From contig NC_047077.1 in NCBI RefSeq assembly GCF_902459465.1, positions 5,828,001 to 5,892,000 of the forward strand: a stretch of 64,000 bases of DNA, written 5' to 3'. Below, one piece after another: positions 381 through 29,194 of the stretch. Position 1 is the stretch's first letter. Each line of letters starts with the position of its first letter. The DNA is from Asterias rubens. Lineage: Eukaryota. The notes under the pieces are model-generated. The model saw nothing but the letters and a program-made list of their open reading frames with translations, made no database searches and was not told the DNA's origin. The position numbers were made by a program, and so were the translations under genes.

Positions 381-610
381 CTGCACAACAACAAAAATGT
401 TAAAAAAGAGTAACTATAAATATAAATATGAATAGTGAACTTGCGGGTAAAACCATGGGTAAAATATCTTTGAGGGAGTGCTGGCTCTGGAAAGAGCCGG
501 GTTGGTTTCAAACAGTATACTCTGACGATTCAAATTCATATTTATAGTTACTCTTATTCTCCACACCATGCAAAGCTTCAAACACCATTTAGAAGTTTAA
601 CATATGTTAA

Positions 611-716
611 AGTTGCATCAAGGATGAAGAATATTATTTGGTTTTACCCGTGTACTTTTCCCGAGTTCAGTGAAAAAAAATCACAGGTGCATTACTCGGT
701 TGAGATTCAAACCCCC
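611..716 (-). mobile_element. Fragment of a tRNA-related interspersed repeat
   Basis: TTGCATC..GGAT.AAGAATATT...TTTTACCC...CCCGAGT...GTGAAAAAA..CACAGG...TTACTCGG.TG.GATTC.AA also occurs at 51915-52050 and 53170-53345, and in part reversed at about 41000-41040. It contains a reverse B box. Confidence 0.6.
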
Positions 717-781
717 GTTTTGGCCTCGGGAATATTGCAATGGTAAGAACTAGCAGGGAAGAGAGGGCACGCTGTGGTCTA

Positions 782-881
782 NNNNNNNNNNNNNNNNNNN
801 NNNNNNNNNNNNNNNNNNNNNNNNNNNNNNNNNNNNNNNNNNNNNNNNNNNNNNNNNNNNNNNNNNNNNNNNNNNNNNNNN
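782..881. other. Assembly gap (100 N)
   Basis: Run of N. The tandem array starts immediately to its right. Confidence 0.99.
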
Positions 882-3800
882 GGGGACAGAAATTTATCAG
901 TAGGATTTTTCCATTAAATTTCAACTGATCAAGTTGGTCTAGTGGTAGAACTAATTGCCTCCGAAGTCGGAGGTCCTTGGTTCAAATCCCAGGTGGGGTC
1001 TACAACGTTTTTGTTACAACTTCAAAGTTTGATGGGGGACAGAAATTTATCAGTAGGATTTTTCCATTAAATTTCAACTGATCAAGTTGGTCTAGTGGTA
1101 GAACTAATTGCCTCCGGAATCGGAGGTCCTTGGTTCAAATCCCAGGTGGGGTCTACAAAGTTTTTGTTACAACTTCAAAGTTTGATGGGGGCGGAAATTT
1201 ATCAGTAGGATTTTTCAATTATTTTTCAACTGATCAAGTTGGTCTAGTGGTAGAACTAATTGCCTCCGGAGTCGGAGGTCCTTGGTTCAAATCACAGGTG
1301 GGGTCTACAAAGTTTTTGTTACAACTTCAAAGTTTGATGGGGGTCAGAAATTTATCAGTAGGATTTTTCCATTATTTTTCAACTGATCAAGTTGGTCTAG
1401 TGGTAGAACTAATTGCCTCCGAAGTCGGAGGTCCTTGGTTCAAATCCCAAGTGGGGTCTACAAAGTTTTTGTTACAACTTCAAAGTTTGATGGGGGACAG
1501 AAATTTATCAGTAGGATTTTTCCATTAAATTTCAACTGATCAAATTGGTGTAGTGGTAGAACTAATTGCCTCCGGAGTCGGAGGTCCTTGGTTCAAATCC
1601 CAAGTGGGGTCTACAAAGTTTTTGTTACAACTTCAAAGTTTGATGGGGGACAGAAATTTATCAGTAGGATTTTTCCATTAAATTTCAACTGATCAAGTTG
1701 GTCTAGTGGTAGAACTAATTGCCTCCGGAGTCGGAGGTCCTTGGTTCAAATCCCAGGTGGGGTCTACAAAGTTTTTGTTACAACTTCAAAGTTTGATGGG
1801 GATGGAAATTTATCAGTAGGATTTTTCCATTATGTTTCAACTGATCAAATTGGTCTAGTGGTAGAACTAATTGCCTCCGAAGTCGGAGGTCCTCGGTTCA
1901 AATCCAAGTGGGGTCTACAAAGTTTTTGTTACAACTTCAAAGTTTGATGGGGGACAGAAATTTATCAGTAGGATTTTTCCATTAAATTTCAACTGATCAA
2001 GTTGGTCTAGTGGTAGGACTAATTGCCTCCGAAGTCGGAGGTCCTTGGTTCAAATCCCAAGTGGGGTCTACAAAGTTTTTGTTACAACTTCAAAGTTTGA
2101 TGGGGAGGGAAATTTATCAGTAGGATTTTTCCATTATTTTTCAACTGATCAAGTTGGTCTAGTGGTAGAACTAATTGCCTCCGAAGTCGGAGGTCCTTGG
2201 TTCAAATCCCAAGTGGGGTCTACAAAGTTTTTGTTACAACTTCAAAGTTTGATGGGGAGGGAAATTTATCAGTAGGATTTTTCCATTATTTTTCAACTGA
2301 TCAAGTTGGTCTAGTGGTAGAACTAATTGCCTCCGGAGTCGGAGGTCCTTGGTTCAAATCCCAAGTGGGGTCTACAAAGTTTTTGTTACAACTTCAAAGT
2401 TTGATGGGGGACAGAAATTTATCAGTAGGATTTTTCCATTATTTTTCAACTGATCAAGTTGGTCTAGTGGTAGAACTAATTGCCTCCGGAGTCGGAGGTC
2501 CTTGGTTCAAATCCCAAGTGGGGTCTACAAAGTTTTTGTTACAACTTCAAAGTTTGATGGGGGAGAGAAATTTATCAGTAGGATTTTTCCATTAAATTAC
2601 AACTGATCAAGTTGGTCTAGTGGTAGAACTAATTGCCTCCGAAGTCGGAGGTCCTTGGTTCAAATCCCAGGTGGGGTCTACAACGTTTTTGTTACAACTT
2701 CAAAGTTTGATGGGGGAGAGAAATTTATCAGTAGGATTTTTCCATTAAATTTCAACTGATCAAGTTGGTCTAGTGGTAGAGCTAATTGCCTCCGAAGTCG
2801 GAGGTCCTTGGTTCAAATCCCAAGTGGGGTCTACAAAGTTTTTGTTACAACTTCAAAGTTCGATGGGGGACAGAAATCTATCAGTAGGATTTTTCCATTA
2901 AATTTCAACTGATCAAGTTGGTCTAGTGGTAGAACTAATTGCCTCCGAAGTCGGAGGTCCTTGGTTCAAATCCCAAGTGGGGTCTACAAAGTTTTTGTTA
3001 CAACTTCAAAGTTTGATGGGGACGGAAATTTATCAGTAGGATTTTTCCATTAAATTTCAACTGATCAATTTGGTCTAGTGGTAGAACTAATTGCCTCCGA
3101 AGTCGGAGGTCCTTGGTTCAAATCCCAGGTGGGGTCTACAAAGTTTTTGTTACAACTTCAAAGTTTGATGGGGACGGAAATTTATCAGTAGGATTTTTCC
3201 ATTAAATTTCAACTGATCAAGTTGGTCTAGTGGTAGAACTAATTGCCTCCGGAGTTGGAGGTCCTTGGTTCAAATCCCAGGTGGGGTCTACAAAGTTTTT
3301 GTTACAACTTCAAAGTTTGATGGGGCGGAAATTTATCAGTAGCATTTTTCCATTATTTTTCAACTGATCAAGTTGGTCTAGTGGTAGAACTAATTGCCTC
3401 CGAAGTCGGAGGTCCTTGGTTCAAATCCCAGGTGGGGTCTACAAAGTTTTTGTTACAACTTCAAAGTTTGATGGGGGACAGAAATTTATCAGTAGGATTT
3501 TTCCATTATTTTTCAACTGATCAAGTTGGTCTAGTGGTAGAACTAATTGCCTCCGGAGTTGGAGGTCCTTGGTTCAAATCCCAGGTGGGGTCTACAAAGT
3601 TTTTGTTACAACTTCAAAGTTTGATGGGGGCGGAAATTTATCAGTAGGATTTTTCCATTAATTTTCAACTGATCAAGTTGGTCTAGTGGTAGAACTAATT
3701 GCCTCCGAAGTCGGAGGTCCTTGGTTCAAATCCCAGGTGGGGTCTACAAAGTTTTTGTTACAACTTCAAAGTTTGATGGGGGACAGAAATTTATCAGTAG

Positions 3801-4844
3801 GATTTTTCCATTAAATTTCAACTGATCAAGTTGGTCTAGTGGTAGAGCTAGTCGCCTCCGAAGTTGGAGGTCCTTGGTTCAAATCCCAAGTGGGGTCTAC
3901 CAAGTTTTTGTTACAACTTCAAAGTTTGATGGGGAGGGAAATTTATCAGTAGGATTTTTCCATTATTTTTCAACTGATCAAGTTGGTCTAGTGGTAGAAC
4001 TAATTGCCTCCGGAGTCGGAGGTCCTTGGTTCAAATCCCAGGTGGGGTCTACAAAGATTTTGTTACAACTTCAAAGTTTGATGGAGGACGGGAATTTATC
4101 AGTAGGATTTTTCCATTATTTTTCAACTGATCAAGTTGGTCTAGTGGTAGAACTAATTGCCTCCGGAGTCGGAGGTCCTTGGTTCAAATCCCCGGTGTGG
4201 TCCACAAAGTTTTTGTTACAACTTCAAAGTTTGATGGGGGACGGAAATTTATCAGTAGGATTTTTCCATTATTTTTCAACTGATCAAGTTGGTCTAGTGG
4301 TAGAACTAATTGCCTCCGAAGTCGGAGGTCCTTAGTTCAAATCCCAGGTGGGGTCTACAAAGTTTTTGTTACAACTTAGATTTCAAAGTTTGATTGGGGA
4401 CGGAAGTTTATCAGTAGGATTTTTCCATTATTTTTCAACTGATCAAGTTGGTCTAGTGGTAGAACTAATTGCCTCCGGAGTCGGAGGTCCTTGGTTCAAA
4501 TCCCAGGTGGGGTCTACAAAGTTTTTGTTACAACTTCAAAGTTTGATGGGGGACGGAAATTTATAAGTAGGATTTGTCCATAATTTTTTTTAACTGATCA
4601 AGTTGTTCTAGTGGTAGAACTAATTGCTTCCAGAGTCGGAGGTCCTTGGTTCAAATCCCAGGTGGGGTATACATAGTTTTTGTTACAACTTAGATTTCAA
4701 AGTTTGATGGGTGACGGACATTTATTAGGAGGATTTTTCCATTATTTTTCAACTGATCAAGTTGTTTTAGTGGTAGAACTAATTGCCTCCGGAGTTGGAG
4801 GTCCTTTGGTTCAAATCCCAGGTGGGGTCTACAAAGTTTTTTTT
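882..4844 (+). repeat. Tandem array of about 26 copies of a 152-153 bp unit containing a tRNA-like Pol III module
   Basis: Unit core AACTGATCAAGTTGGTCTAGTGGTAGAACTAATTGCCTCCG(A/G)AGTCGGAGGTCCTTGGTTCAAATCCCA(G/A)GTGGGGTCTACAAAGTTTTTG is repeated head to tail. It has an A box (TGGTCTAGTGG), a B box (GGTTCAAATCC) and a T5 run downstream. The ORFs called here are frame-shifting artefacts of the repeat. Confidence 0.95.
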
Positions 4845-6369
4845 CAACTATTGCTTTTCTAAACATTGTAATATCTGTATTGAAGAAATTCTTTTTTTTA
4901 ATATAATAATTACATGTAAAAAGAATAATCACATGTGTACACAATGTGTACTTTTATACCGTCTTCTTGTGACTAGTTTTAGTTAGCGGTCTAACCACCG
5001 CCAAACTCAGTTAACTTTGAGGAAAAGTGTCCGAAGTTTATTCTTAGTCTTAGTTTATTCTTACCAAACTAAAGGACAAAACAATTGCTATGTTGGGGGT
5101 CAAAATAAAGTTGGAAACATCAGAACCAAATTTCATAAAGCTGGTAACAGATCACATTTTTGGTTTTTGCTAAGCAAACTAGTGGGATGGGACACTAGCA
5201 ATTTGGCTGATGTTTCTGCTAAGGGATACTATTTCTGTGTTTATAGCAAGCTTGTGTGCTTACAAAAGTTTTTACAAATTTGCCCCAGCTCACAAACAAA
5301 TGTTGGAGTTGTAAACAAAGTTTGAGTTCGCACATATTGGTAGTTTGTTGCAAAAATTGGGAGAGAATAATACTTGAATCTGCGATTCAATATTTAATGC
5401 AGACTTAAAGATAACGGGTTTCCACTTGTAAAATACCTATTATTAACACATTCTTATTGATTCAGATATGTTTTGGTTAATTGTTTCAACCGTTCCTGAA
5501 AATGTAGCATGAATAAAGACACACACTAGTCTTACTTTGGGGTCGTTATTTCAGGAATAGTTTTCCCGACTGCAGACTTCAAGATAATAACAAACGGTTA
5601 CAAACGCTTTTTATAGACAAACTCGTCCGATCCAGGCAACGTGTTCCTTTAAAAGAAAATGGGTTTTTGTATTGATGCAAACCTCTAAAAATAACAGAAA
5701 CACATCCCCCCCCTCCCCACCAACAAAAAAACAAAAACAAAACAATTTACAGCAAAATAAAATCACCAAGTCAAATCTTCGCCGCCACATCCTTTAGCTA
5801 AAAGTAGTAGTTGAGAAGTTGAATTTTGTCTCAAGCATTATTTTAATTTAATTTTATTTTATTTCAAATCTTCGGACATAATTTTTTTTGGCCAGGGGCC
5901 GTCCAGGGTAGGGTAACAATTTTAAAAACTGTCATCAAAGCGATGTGCCCTCCCAGACCCCTCCAACAATAAACATACATTGTTTGTATAAAAAATACAG
6001 GAAAATAAAAAAACCTGCATTTTAAAAATGTATATAATTACATAACTAATAAAAAGTTGACGACAACTACTCTGTATCCCCGTAACAATAAAACAAAACC
6101 TCATGGGTTTCTCTGTATGCACATTCAACATTATTGTAACACATTTTTGTTGATGAGATGTTTTTTGTTTGTTTTTATTTATGAAATTTTGCCGTCCACA
6201 AAAGTATCCTCGAAAAAAAAGGTTAAAAAATTGCTCTCCATAAAAAAACGTCGCCTCTTACTTATAAATCCAGTTTTTTTTTCACATAAGCTTGTCACCA
6301 TGCTGGTATACTTGCCTCTGAATAAAATAAATAATATTTGACGGACATTCCCTCCGTACCCTGTTACCA

Positions 6370-8260: not shown

Positions 8261-8420
8261 GGATAATATTGCTGAACATGGGAATTGTTTTAACGACGTA
8301 TACAACATGTACGTAAGGCTTCAAAGAATGTATAGGGTCAAGTGGAAACAAAGCGTAAGTTACAAAACCTGAATAGATTTACACTATTATTGTAAAACAA
8401 ATCCCTCATTGGGCCCAAGG

Positions 8421-8575
8421 GAGCTCCGTCCCTCATGGAACCCTGGCGGAGCTCCGTCCCTCATGGAACCCTGGCGTAGCTCCGTCCCCATGGAACCCTG
8501 GTGGAGCTCCGTCCCTCATGGGGCCCTGGCGGAGCTCCGTCCCTCATAAAACCGTGGCGGAGCTCCGTCCCCGGC
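8421..8575. repeat. 28-bp GC-rich minisatellite (GGAGCTCCGTCCCTCATGGAACCCTGGC, about 5.5 copies)
   Basis: Direct tandem copies read from the sequence. The tract runs into another inverted, diverged copy of the GC-rich local repeat. Confidence 0.9.
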
Positions 8576-10561
8576 GAACATGTAGAGTAGAAGAGTCAGG
8601 AGTTCGGGTACTGGAGAGCAGGGTCTAGGCCAAGGACAATACGGGTCCAGCTGTACAACTGCTCCTATTCCAATTGTTTTTAAAGGAACCACTTATTGCT
8701 AGGTGGCTCCCCCGTAATTCGTTACATAACGCTTAAGTTACGGATTAATTGACCCTATTCGAAATTTGGCTAGGTGGTATTTTGGGTACGTAGAGTTGAA
8801 ATCATGGTGGCATGGATATCGGACGTAAATTAACGTTTTACATCAATTATTTTCCACGTTAAGCAGATCTTATATATCAATATAAACCGCAAATCTTTAA
8901 TATAACATCTGCATCTATCTTTAGCTTGTTTAGAGAGCCATTTTTCTTCGTGGCTCCCGGTGGTGATGTTTTTTATCATTCTTGTAAGGATATTGCATGT
9001 GATTAGAAATTTGGCAAGGCGGTAATTTGGGGACGTACTTGAAGTCATGGTGTGAAAGTAGTTTCCAAAGTAGGAAATCGGGCGTACAACAAACGTTTGA
9101 AAATAATTATTCACTTTATGCAGATCTTTAGTGTAACGTGACCAATGATTTTTATAATGCGAATAATTAGTATAAAACGTTTACTTCATGTTTTCTGCAA
9201 ACTACCTCCACACCATGACTTCAACTACGTCCCCAAATGACCCACTTGCCAAAATTTCAAGACTGGTCTAAAGAAAGATGGAAACTTTCACCCCGGGGGC
9301 CATGAAGCACAAAGTGGCTCCCTAAAGAAGCTAAAGACAGATTACAGAATAAAACGTAGTAAAAAGGAATAAAAAGGAAACTGTCACTATAATTGACAAG
9401 CGAAAGAAAAAATGAATTTTTCAAAACAATTATATAACTCTACACTGAATTTCCGTTCAGAAAACAAACCGAGTGATTTTCCACTTCGTTCGGTGGTAGG
9501 TTATAATTATGTAGCTGCCTTAGTACGTAAAGATCATCCCTCATGGGGCCCTGGCGGAGCTCCGTCCCTCATAAAACCGTGGCGGAGCTCCGTCCCCGGC
9601 GAACATGTAGAGTAGAAGAGTCGGGAGTTCGGGTACTGGAGAGCAGGGTCTAGGCCAAGGACAATACGGGTCCAGCTGTACAACTGCTCCTATTCCAATT
9701 GTTTTTAAAGGAACCACTTATTGCTAGGTGGCTCCCCCGTAATTCGTTACATAACGCTTAAGTTACGGATTAATTGACCCTATTCGAAATTTGGCTAGGT
9801 GGTATTTTGGGTACGTAGAGTTGAAATCATGGTGGCATGGATATCGGACGTAAATTAACGTTTTACATCAATTATTTTCCACGTTAAGCAGATCTTATAT
9901 ATCAATATAAACCGCAAATCTTTAATATAACATCTGCATCTATCTTTAGCTTGTTTAGAGAGCCATTTTTCTTCGTGGCTCCCGGTGGTGATGTTTTTTA
10001 TCATTCTTGTAAGGATATTGCATGTGATTAGAAATTTGGCAAGGCGGTAATTTGGGGACGTACTTGAAGTCATGGTGTGAAAGTAGTTTCCAAAGTAGGA
10101 AATCGGGCGTACAACAAACGTTTGAAAATAATTATTCACTTTATGCAGATCTTTAGTGTAACGTGACCAATGATTTGTATAATGCGAATAATTAGTATAA
10201 AACGTTTACTTCATGTTTTCTGCAAACTACCTCCACACCATGACTTCAACTACGTCCCCAAATGACCCACTTGCCAAAATTTCAAGACTGGTCTAAAGAA
10301 AGATGGAAACTTTCACCCCGGGGGCCATGAAGCACAAAGTGGCTCCCTAAAGAAGCTAAAGACAGATTACAGAATAAAACGTGGTAAAAAGGAATAAAAA
10401 GGAAACTGTCACTATAATTGACAAGCGAAAGAAAAAATGAATTTTTCAAAACAATTATATAACTCTACACTGAATTTCCGTTCAGAAAACAAACCGAGTG
10501 ATTTTCCACTTCGTTCGGTGGTAGGTTATAATTATGTAGCTGCCTTAGTACGTAAAGATCA
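8512..10561. repeat. Near-perfect 1025-bp tandem duplication (8512-9536 and 9537-10561)
   Basis: Identical ORFs at 8830-9114 and 9855-10139 are offset by 1025. I saw only about three substitutions between the copies. Confidence 0.95.
8915..9345. mobile_element. Fold-back / MITE-like element with about 150-bp inverted arms (second copy at 9940-10370)
   Basis: TATCTTTAGCTTGTTTAGAGAGCCA...GGGGACGTACTTGAAGTCATGGTGTG is the inverse of CACACCATGACTTCAACTACGTCCCC...GGCTCCCTAAAGAAGCTAAAGACA. Confidence 0.65.
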
Positions 10562-26199: not shown

Positions 26200-29194
26200 C
26201 CTAGTCATCCATGCTATGTGTTTGTGGTTCTTAAATGTGCACTACCAATCTTGTACATGACTTGGACTCGAACCCACACTCTGCTGATCAGAAACACCAG
26301 AGCTTGAGTCTGGTGTGCTTGACCAATTGCCGCAACATGTCCTATCAAATGTCAGTATAAAAAATGTACAAATATACCACAGTGTTATATTTATGCCTTT
26401 TATTCAGTGGAAATCAACCAGAGAATGTCGGAAGCTAACAATAATTCATTGCTGGCATACTCTTTCACTACTTCCATATTATGGTTATTACTGTGTCAAG
26501 AAGTACAAAAGATTGCTATTTCATTTTCTCACATTACATACATACATATACAGATAGTTTTAATTATGTGTTTTTAAAAAACAGCACTTGAAATTTGCGT
26601 CTATCGCTTTTGAGTATCCTGTTTATAAGTGTGACCTAATTCCAGTTTAAGCCGCCCCAACTTCATACCAATTGGCTCCACTGATTACCAAGGCCCAATT
26701 TCATAAATCCTGTCAGCATAAAAACTTGCTAAGCACAGACAAATCTTGCTAAACAGAAACTTGTAAGCAGCCAAAACTCCATAAAGTTTACATTGTTGCA
26801 ACTGGTGCCATGCTTATGTTTTGCTTAGCAAAGAGATTTACTAAGCAATATTCAGCTTTGGAGCTGGAAGAATAAACAAACTTTGGACATGCAGCAGATG
26901 CACTCGTGTGGCTCAATGTTTTAACAAATTGATACTCTTGCAGTCAGCTTAATATATACAGATAGTAAACTAGCTGATTATATAGTTTCAAGTTATTTAT
27001 TTATTTATTTTCTGTTTCATTTACAGGAAGTTATTTTGACACAGTTGAACTTTCTTTCACAGGAAACCGTGTTAAATGCACTGAACACATTTTGTTTTTA
27101 CTCACAATATTAGCATAAAAACTTCCTTGGTTACGAGAGCTGTTGATAGTACAATCTCAGATTCAAATATTTTAGTGAGAAGCTACCTCTTTCTAAAAAC
27201 TACAGTACTTCAGAAAGAGTGTTCTCACGAAGTGTGATACTACCAACAACTCTCCATTGCTTGTTACCAAGTAATTTTTTGGGGAAAGAGCTAAGAATAG
27301 TCTCATCTCGACTTAGGACAAGTTACTCATCTTAAGTTAGTAACTCCTAACTCTTTGTGAAATCGACCCCAGTGCCTTTAAGTATGGGAGCATTTTGGGG
27401 AGGATGACACCCTCTGCCACATGTTCAGCATGGTATAGACTAACGTCTGAATAAATTTGTTTGCTCAACAGAATGCCTGTACACAAGTTGCTCATTGCAT
27501 AATGCCAATACTTACTCATTATATTCTCCCATTGTAACGTAGAATCAATATTTACACATAGACCTTAAAGGTATTACACAGGATTGGTAGAGCTGACGAA
27601 ATAGTCACAGCAAGGAAGGTAGTGGTAGCACTTACAGACTAACTAATTATACATGTATACAAAACTGCATGAGTTTTGGTAGTAACAACTACTTCATCGT
27701 AGGATGCAAGGATGTAGTTGTTGCTACAAAAGCTCTTGAAGGTTTTTATATAATTAGTTTAACTGCAAGTGCTACCACTACCCTTTCTTGTTTTATCTAC
27801 TAAATTAAAACTATTTTTTAATAGTCATAGAAATAGTGTGTATGTTCTGTGATCAACCATATACATTAAGTAACAAACAAGTGAAAATTTGGGCTTAATC
27901 CTTTGTGCGAGTCAGGAGAAAACAGTGACAAGCATGCACAATGTTACAGCATGTACACAGTGTTCTTAATTTTGGTTGTAACAACCAAAATCAGCTATTG
28001 TATTTTGTAAGGGTTTCAATGAGCCAGAAACAGTTTTCTTGATCAATTCATTTCAGTGGGAAAAATTTCCAAACAAAAATGGTTCTAGTCTGAACTTCAT
28101 AATCAGTAAACTTTGAAACTAAATATTAAACAATGTTTTCTATCCGTATCAATCCTGTATTACACCGTTATAAGAAACCTATAGACCCTTACTATTTGCA
28201 TTCTAAATAATTATTTGCGTAATATATGTCTTTAGAAAATATTCACTATAAAATATGTAAATCTACTGATGGGCTAATGATCTGCTTGCGACAGTTGTCA
28301 GAGCTTTTATCTTTCAATTTACACATCATGACTTGTTGGATTTGAAACTTTGCATGGTCAGGGTATAAACTAAGAGAGGTTTGCAGTAACAAGTGAATAT
28401 CTCTTTTGAGTAACATTGGTTCGGAACGGCACCGGTGGTTAACAACTCAATGTTGCAATCAGTTTGCTCTGATCGTCTTCAGGAGTGAATATTACTCGAA
28501 AGGAGATATTCACATGGTGTTAACTCAAACCTCTTTTAGACGTCATGATATTGATTTGATCAAGAAGCATCACATGATAAAATCAAAATCATGGCCTTAT
28601 CAATAAGAAACTTTTTGTTTGTGCCCTTAATTTATGCCCTTAATTTCTGACTCGGAAATCATTTTTACAAATCTGCCTACATTTACTGAAAATGAACTTG
28701 TACAATCTAGTTCAATTTAAATATACCTTTATAACAGTACTTTACAGTAAAGATGATGTGATCGTACGTTAATGTTTGAAGCAGCCATTTTGTATTTTCG
28801 TTCATTGTAAACCACTCGAGTCAAGGTGAGGCTGTGATGAAATAGTCTGACAGTACTTGGAGGAATGTCAGTCAACCATTTGGTAATTTCATGTTGATGG
28901 TAAAAATATCACTATCATTATAGTTTTCCAAATGTTTGACCGATTAGAAAGATCTATGAGGCACTAAAAGGTTTTAAATGACGAATGAAATTTACAGCTT
29001 ATAATAGAACCTTAACTAGTCTTTATCTTAGAAATATACATAAGTTTTAAGTTTATAATAAAAAAATTAAAATCATAAACTCCACGGTCTAATTTAGCAA
29101 TTGCATTTTGTAAAATAAGTTTTCCTCTTGTATTTATAAGCAAGTATGAGCTGCATCATAAATTTACATTGCGTTTAACAGCCAAAAGGAAGTG

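Follow-up and report, generated by a model that had tools for sequence, protein, structure and literature searches.

Two papers (PMC10702118, PMC9659126) list newt PolIII/TAN, Xenopus OAX/satellite 1, Hy/Pol III and Rana/Pol III as tandem families related to tRNA. PolIII/TAN of Cynops pyrrhogaster (Nagahashi et al. 1991) is given with a unit of ~360 nt that was traced to tRNA-Glu and transcribed in vitro (PMC10702118), and OAX/satellite 1 of Xenopus laevis (Ackerman 1983; Lam and Carroll 1983) is described there as abundant and transcribed in oocytes (PMC10702118, PMC9659126). For SINE-derived satellites of squamates, a particular section of a known SINE can be aligned with the unit (PMC10702118). 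The array analysed here lies in a 64,000-nucleotide stretch of the sea star Asterias rubens (the window: contig NC_047077.1, positions 5,828,001 to 5,892,000). With PolIII/TAN it shares a tandem unit that combines a tRNA-derived segment with Pol III boxes and for which no matching SINE is known; it differs in its unit of 153 or 159 bp, in its echinoderm host and in a transcription that is only predicted. OAX/satellite 1 is likewise a satellite that carries Pol III signals and has a tRNA-related segment at its centre, but its unit is much longer and it is abundant, whereas the sea-star family has only ~470–480 units. Tandem arrays with tRNA-related promoter heads are common to the squamate satellites and the sea star, whose dispersed tRNA-like family is also arrayed; the satellite unit, however, aligns only over a generic A-box-to-B-box stretch. 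Earlier descriptions of the class come chiefly from amphibians and, for satellites derived from SINEs, from reptiles; the locus would add an echinoderm example with two subfamilies.

Tandem Repeats Finder (TRF) reported a single array at 882–4849 with a period of 153, 25.9 copies and 95% matches. Our own anchoring gave 26 head-to-tail units of 152–153 bp, ~95% alike, with a unit-to-unit spacing of 151–153 bp and of 155–159 bp for the last three. The array is directly preceded by a run of 100 N, so that '26 or more' units, as an earlier note on this DNA had put it, is the right wording. The following features were placed (window positions):

782–881: run of 100 N hiding the left end of the array, which starts, in unit phase, at base 882
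882–4849, forward strand: tandem array of 26 units, assigned to the 153-bp subfamily of a probably tRNA-derived satellite (TRF, unit alignment, family assignment)
2407–2559, forward strand: unit 11, representative unit and search query, composed of a 45-nt 5′ spacer, a 75-nt tRNA-like segment and a 33-nt 3′ spacer
2452–2526, forward strand: tRNA-like segment of unit 11, 75 nt (tRNA-sized), failing tRNA models; the homologous 159-bp segment is called tRNA-Gln/Arg/Glu by ARAGORN
2460–2470, forward strand: A box TGGTCTAGTGG of unit 11, with no fixed difference between the subfamilies
2473–2508, forward strand: predicted hairpin of unit 11, with an outer stem of 7 bp, a 2×2 internal loop, an inner stem of 7 bp and the tetraloop G/A-AGU (energy, pair counts)
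2504–2514, forward strand: B box GGTTCAAATCC of unit 11, sharing bases with the T arm in the cloverleaf fold and with the 3′ strand of the hairpin's outer stem
2533–2537, forward strand: T5 run of unit 11, 18 nt downstream of the B box and a candidate Pol III terminator; units of the 159-bp subfamily carry T4 at this point
4551–4862, forward strand: two degenerate edge units (25–26) with 6-bp insertions and damaged A boxes (unit alignment)

The A box, B box and T5 run claimed for the units were all recovered, the exact A box in 23/26, the exact B box in 24/26 and a run of at least five T, 18–19 nt past the B box, in 24/26 window units. The array ends just past a T run. TRF also gave a 305-bp period, and a higher-order repeat was rejected, as units at lag 2 are neither more nor less alike than those at lag 1 and the variants follow one another without regular alternation. 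Open reading frames of 72–153 aa within the array are artefacts of a period divisible by three.

The genome was scanned with a 28-mer allowing ≤3 mismatches, which returned 419 matches against 0 for the reversed control pattern and thus far more than chance would give. The check for dispersed copies that the earlier note had proposed, done by searches with the unit and with patterns, showed nine arrays whose units repeat every 153 or 159 bp. They hold ~470–480 units on seven chromosome-scale and three smaller contigs (about 75 kb in total, 0.02% of the genome) and range from 5 to about 111 units and up to 17 kb. The window array, C28 and C33 belong to the 153-bp subfamily, and C10, C1, C65, C17b, C23 and C12 to the 159-bp subfamily. 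Identity is 93.6–95.6% in the 153-bp subfamily, being the same within its three arrays as between them (about 94%), 87–97% in the 159-bp subfamily, within and between arrays, and 79–83% between units of the two. Departures from the consensus are 5 times more frequent at CpG sites than elsewhere, and the edge units of arrays are degenerate. The arrays end at differing unit positions, and their borders carry no target-site duplication, fixed 3′ end or poly-A tail. Flanking sequences are unrelated: all-against-all BLAST of the 2-kb flanks revealed no shared termini, only small unrelated repeats, and a transposon carrier was rejected on this ground. One of the nine arrays is embedded in another satellite. 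A marine metagenome scan with a 26-mer from the unit gave 0 matches.

No tRNA was called in the window array by ARAGORN, and the Rfam tRNA model (RF00005; threshold 29 bits) had no match at E≤10 in 600–5200, in agreement with the claim that the array unit is not a tRNA. The poor pairing of the acceptor and anticodon stems noted at first inspection was confirmed: folded as a cloverleaf, the window unit pairs 5/7 positions of the acceptor stem, two or three of them as G-U, and 3/5 of the anticodon stem, two of them as G-U; over the 153-bp subfamily the two stems are 71% and 58% paired. The sister subfamily is closer to a tRNA, since ARAGORN recognises 75-nt tRNAs in 58 units from the 159-bp arrays and in none from the 153-bp arrays, and the minimum-energy fold of the 159-bp consensus is cloverleaf-shaped, while in that of the 153-bp consensus a tetraloop stem replaces the 7-nt anticodon loop. 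Under the cloverleaf model five pairs are changed on both sides, and pairing in the T arm stands at 95%, following a C-G > U-G > U-A path. The best Rfam tRNA score among the 159-bp units was nevertheless 20.7 bits, under the threshold. The called anticodons are CTG, CCG, CTC or TTG (Gln/Arg/Glu), and as they shift into one another by CpG transitions, no decoding identity is retained. Possible resemblances to tRNA-Pro, tRNA-Gly and tRNA-Gln are given no weight here. A genome pattern search for the parent tRNA gene, excluding the satellite, returned a dispersed SINE-like family and no true tRNA. Real tRNA clusters are present in the same genome, as seen in an RF00005 scan that scored 63 of ~77,000 candidates, too few for a working catalogue of tRNA genes. 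The satellite is like such gene arrays in that a tRNA-sized Pol III unit is repeated head-to-tail with a short spacer, but the window units are not recognised by the tRNA models and carry a tetraloop where an anticodon loop would be (153-bp consensus), and the 'anticodon' drifts among four triplets. Annotation should keep satellite units out of the tRNA gene count, including those that ARAGORN calls.

The 14-bp hairpin proposed in the earlier note is indeed a favoured fold. For a predicted transcript of 94 nt it lies within the minimum-energy fold (−29.1 kcal/mol, z = −2.6), and for the 75-nt consensus of the 153-bp subfamily the minimum-energy fold is the long hairpin, which contributes −20.3 of −28.6 kcal/mol. 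The exact hairpin string, with the A/G and C/T variants allowed, occurs in 18/26 window units. Unit variant counts also agreed with what had been said of these variants: A and G, roughly half and half, occupy a tetraloop position, and C>T converts a G-C pair to a G-U pair. Comparison among units was less favourable to the structure. No hairpin pair is changed on both sides, covariation is below that of 491/500 shuffles, and RNAalifold, the check that had been suggested, did not recover the hairpin across the family, in which the T arm is kept. Owing to CpG decay, variation within the unit peaks in the inner stem, where 2.8% of sites differ in the 153-bp and 10.3% in the 159-bp subfamily; the overall figure is 2.6%. 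Of the 159-bp units, 97% lack the outermost pair of the outer stem, beside the internal loop, and 38% have G-A as the apical pair. On the sequences compared, the long hairpin is a condition derived within the 153-bp subfamily.

In all, we consider it likely that the window array is one array of a low-copy, multi-locus satellite whose unit derives from a decayed tRNA gene or tRNA-like Pol III module. Such a gene or module, with about 80 bp of the DNA beside it, would have given rise to the unit, and the family would then have split into its 159-bp and 153-bp subfamilies, the arrays presumably growing and being homogenised by unequal exchange and gene conversion while they decayed, as observed, at CpG sites and edges. 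RNA of the 159-bp subfamily would fold into a four-armed, tRNA-like shape with a 7-bp/tetraloop stem at the place of the anticodon arm. Three substitutions in the 153-bp subfamily may have let the 3′ strand of the former D arm pair with the 5′ strand of the T arm into the long hairpin, which would be a by-product of drift and not a selected structure, and is not a vault RNA. The two subfamilies would thus represent stepwise loss of a cloverleaf and the chance birth of an alternative hairpin, and perhaps a useful case of tRNA-module decay in satellites. The unit retains an intact type-2 Pol III promoter and T-run, so that TFIIIC could bind it and an RNA of ~85 nt could be made from it.

An attractive alternative was an amplified locus of a functional structured Pol III ncRNA, vault-RNA-like or another small RNA, with transcripts of ~85 nt carrying the 14-bp hairpin. 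It is suggested by promoter boxes and T5 runs intact in 23–24/26 units, by the dominance of the hairpin in the minimum-energy fold, by the C>T variant that still pairs and by the relative invariance of the A and B boxes. A vault RNA (RF00006) is also a short Pol III RNA of similar predicted length, with internal A and B boxes and a T-run. The satellite unit, however, misses the Vault model, leaves its A box unpaired in the hairpin model and lacks a terminal panhandle, the 5′ and 3′ ends of the predicted unit RNA being without one in the minimum-energy folds. No Vault, Y RNA or other Rfam family was credibly matched on the array, where the scan at gathering thresholds and at E≤10 gave only chance matches to snoR26 and ToxI. 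The Vault model instead identified four genuine vault RNA genes elsewhere in the genome (C37, C23; 49–58 bits, threshold 34 bits), which fold with a terminal panhandle and share no sequence similarity with the satellite unit. Together with the hairpin's missing two-sided changes and covariation, the pairs lost in 159-bp units and the high variability of the inner stem, this makes a functional hairpin RNA very unlikely. Of the two readings put forward in the earlier note, the vault-like Pol III ncRNA was therefore given up; that of a tRNA- or SINE-head-derived satellite stood, as a multi-locus tandem family with a tRNA-like sister subfamily, and the locus was filed under tRNA-derived satellites with Pol III signals. 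That the satellite goes back to a dispersed SINE and its tRNA-related head, as squamate ones do, rather than to a tRNA gene, is unlikely, though less so than a functional RNA. The dispersed tRNA-like family (about 985 matches to a 27-mer with ≤3 mismatches) has the A box, the variable-loop AGGTC and the B box in common with the unit, itself forms tandem arrays of 77 and 116 bp, scores 30–36 in local alignment against 17.5 ± 2.4 for shuffles and has a fragment adjoining the window array at 653–717. The likeness is limited, however, to a generic tRNA-like core of 58 nt from A box to B box; the anticodon-arm region matches only at about 40%, and in alignment with this one ~985-copy family the unit spacers are no closer to the element flanks than chance. 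Insertion of the arrays by reverse transcription as head-to-tail multimers, like the Penelope-mobilised tandem retroposons with a tRNA-like module, would account for nine unlinked loci with unrelated flanks. It is nonetheless the least probable reading: both array ends vary in unit position, a target-site duplication, fixed 3′ end or tail is absent at the borders, and nearly all copies lie in nine long arrays of up to 17 kb instead of thousands of short inserts.

Other possibilities concern use at the DNA level. Insulator activity is known for tDNAs and a B2 SINE, in yeast and mammals, and the tandem A and B boxes of the satellite may similarly recruit TFIIIC, in the manner of tDNA or ETC sites; transcribed or not, the array would then mark a chromatin boundary or a site of nuclear organisation. 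The boxes are among the least variable segments of the unit: in 469 units extracted without A-box anchoring, the pair ranks 8/159 among circular placements for low variation and the B box alone 9/159, and no fixed box difference separates the 153-bp from the 159-bp subfamily. The signal is weak (about p = 0.05) and was inflated to rank 2/159 when units were picked by A-box anchoring; moreover, the nine arrays lie in unrelated contexts, one inside another satellite, and show no tie to gene boundaries. A TFIIIC site of this kind is accordingly improbable, somewhat more so than the SINE-head origin. On a par with that origin, and hence also doubtful, is the broader view that the family has been kept because its A and B boxes are used, either as TFIIIC chromatin or nuclear-organisation sites or as Pol III clusters whose RNA was tRNA-shaped in the 159-bp subfamily and switched to the hairpin in the 153-bp subfamily; the latter, if true, would be a structural switch in a young ncRNA family of an echinoderm. 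Within the preferred reading of a decaying tRNA-derived satellite, the low variation of the boxes and their lack of fixed subfamily differences hint that the Pol III signals may be under some constraint instead of drifting freely. Weak as it is, this excess conservation of the A and B boxes is a testable hint of TFIIIC or Pol III use of the arrays.

A single array was located in the window at 882-4849 with Tandem Repeats Finder (period 153, 25.9 copies, 95% matches). Anchored on the A-box region, 26 units were spaced at 151-153 bp, the final three at 155-159 bp because of 6-bp insertions. The left end of the array is hidden by 100 N (782-881), which the visible units follow immediately and in phase; 26 units is therefore a lower bound. 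The sequence had been described accurately in the earlier note: the exact A box (TGGTCTAGTGG) was present in 23 of the 26 units, the exact B box (GGTTCAAATCC) in 24, and ≥5 consecutive T, 18-19 nt past the B box, in 24. The exact string of the 14-bp hairpin proposed there (two 7-bp stems around a 2x2 internal loop, with a tetraloop) was found in 18/26.

The assembly (417.6 Mb, 150 contigs) containing the window, G000:C17:5828001-5892000, was searched with a 28-mer of the unit at ≤3 mismatches, which gave 419 matches versus 0 for the reversed control. Satellite copies formed nine arrays genome-wide, with units of 153 or 159 bp; these account for almost all 28-mer matches, and hence solo copies do not form a population of their own.

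Satellite arrays by contig (C-number)
153-bp units, this window, 26 units
153-bp units, C28:1-6500, at contig end
153-bp units, C33:292.9-310 kb, 111 units, 17 kb
159-bp units, C10:9.378 Mb, ~60 units
159-bp units, C1:23.222 Mb, ~30 units
159-bp units, C65:90-98 kb, ~50 units, at contig end
159-bp units, C17:6.641 Mb, ~42 units
159-bp units, C23:5.8165 Mb, 5-6 units
159-bp units, C12:6.923-6.940 Mb, ~106 units, 17 kb

BLAST-based extraction, independent of any single motif, yielded 469 satellite units (~75 kb, 0.02% of the genome). The three 153-bp arrays were 93.6-95.6% identical, both internally and to one another; for the 159-bp arrays the range was 87-97%, and between the two subfamilies it was 79-83%. 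A marine metagenome scan returned no match to the unit.

The tRNA-like segment is tRNA-sized. Its A box occupies tRNA positions 8-18 and its variable loop reads AGGTC; it also has a T arm, and a T run lies 7-8 nt past the discriminator position. No tRNA was called in the window array by ARAGORN or Rfam, even at E≤10. In the 159-bp arrays, ARAGORN called 58 units as 75-nt tRNAs, mostly Gln(CTG), with some Arg(CCG), Glu(CTC) and Gln(TTG), and Rfam scored one unit at 20.7 bits, under the 29-bit tRNA threshold. On these features and calls the family is tRNA-derived, its unit is a decayed tRNA, and the 153-bp subfamily of the window is the more degenerate branch. The 'anticodon' varies by CpG transitions, so decoding identity is not maintained. 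The array belongs to a known class, tandem families that are related to tRNAs and carry Pol III promoters; PMC10702118 and PMC9659126 list the tRNA-Glu-derived PolIII/TAN of the newt Cynops, which is transcribed in vitro, OAX/satellite 1 of Xenopus, Hy/Pol III of Hydromantes, Rana/Pol III and the SINE-derived satellites of squamates. No paper on a tRNA-related Pol III satellite in sea stars was found in the literature.

The proposed hairpin was compared with a cloverleaf. For the 75-nt segment of the 153-bp consensus, the minimum-energy fold was -28.6 kcal/mol, the hairpin contributing -20.3, and the cloverleaf was worth +0.6. The 159-bp consensus folded at -26.1 into a tRNA shape of four arms: the acceptor has 4 bp and the T arm 5 bp, a third arm is D-like, and the inner 7-bp/tetraloop stem occupies the place of the anticodon arm. 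Three substitutions create the long hairpin of the 153-bp units: GT became AA immediately 3' of the D arm, and a C in the 5' strand of the T stem became T. Pairing and covariation were tested on 48 non-identical units representing each of the nine arrays: the hairpin was paired in 89% of cells, with 0 pairs changed on both sides and covariation below 491/500 shuffles, versus 78%, 5 pairs and covariation above 500/500 shuffles for the cloverleaf. The cloverleaf's shuffle control is subject to a stated caveat, relatedness among the sequences. The cloverleaf T arm was 95% paired (series C-G, U-G, U-A), and RNAalifold, a check suggested in the earlier note, retained this arm and not the hairpin. 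Among 159-bp units the outermost pair of the outer stem (beside the internal loop) was missing in 97%, and the apical G-C was replaced by G-A in 38%. The inner stem varied more than any other part of the unit (at 2.8% of sites in 153-bp units and 10.3% in 159-bp units, versus 2.6% overall) because it holds two CpGs; departures from consensus were five times as frequent at CpG as at other sites, and the C>T variant previously read as preserving pairing is one of these transitions. The long hairpin is thus real as a fold, derived in the 153-bp subfamily, but is not a conserved structure.

The observation in the earlier note is real; the vault-like RNA that it proposed is not supported, and the unit is not a vault RNA. 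The Rfam Vault model (RF00006) gave no match in the window array at E≤10. Over the whole genome four loci exceeded its 34-bit threshold (49-58 bits), three within 1.7 kb on C37 (G000:C37:142745-145840) and one on C23 (G000:C23:2578729-2581819). These are genuine vault RNA genes of 90-96 nt with the expected terminal panhandle and T run, and their local alignment score to the satellite unit equalled the shuffle mean.

The A and B boxes had zero fixed differences between subfamilies and low within-family variation. With unbiased extraction the box pair ranked 8/159 circular placements for invariance (B box alone 9, A box alone 23); a rank of 2/159 came from units picked by an anchor overlapping the A box. 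This hints weakly (~p = 0.05) at better preservation of the Pol III signals than of the remaining unit sequence. A role at the Pol III/TFIIIC level is possible.

The other suggestion of the earlier note, a tRNA- or SINE-head-derived satellite, agrees with a tRNA-derived tandem family. A separate dispersed tRNA-like, SINE-type family (~985 matches to a 27-mer at ≤3 mismatches, on every chromosome) shares with the unit only the A-box to B-box core (score 30-36 versus 17.5 ± 2.4 for shuffles), and the spacers gave no alignment to it. It has arrays of its own, with periods of 77 and 116 bp (G000:C13:5506151-5507874 and G000:C12:14414065-14415947); in this genome, therefore, satellites have arisen from tRNA-like modules on more than one occasion. 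A partial copy lies on the minus strand at 653-717, just left of the N run (score 47 versus 16 ± 2). No relationship was found between the flanks of the nine arrays, whose ends fall at differing unit positions without a visible target-site duplication, poly-A tail or fixed 3' end. These features argue against a transposon carrier and equally against Penelope-type multimer retroposition. The nine loci may have been seeded by reintegration of excised circles.

The C23 satellite array (L036, G000:C23:5813001-5821000, ~3640-4590) begins at the B box and stops 5 nt before completing a whole number of units. It is embedded in a 66-bp satellite, part of whose unit (…CTACAATTGTTTTTGTTAT…) is similar to the 3' portion of the 159-bp unit. 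The array at C17:6.641 Mb is adjoined by a 250-bp long inverted repeat (L035:1960-2208, G000:C17:6639960-6640208), probably a MITE-like foldback; its score against the plant MIR2646 model, 95.5 bits, is far under that model's threshold of 245 bits. True tRNA gene clusters (66-74 bits on RF00005, copies every 300-1800 bp) occur at G000:C12:17.870-17.912 Mb and G000:C13:8.536-8.550 Mb, so real tandem tRNA arrays coexist with the decayed satellite. ARAGORN called a 91-nt tRNA-Leu(CAA) on the minus strand at window 26252-26342; Rfam at gathering score found no tRNA there or elsewhere in the window, and the call is either an intron-containing tRNA or false. Two identical 94-codon ORFs (window 8830-9114 and 9855-10139), 1025 bp apart, indicate a ~1-kb direct repeat, and are adjoined by a 28-bp minisatellite of 5.5 copies (8420-8571).
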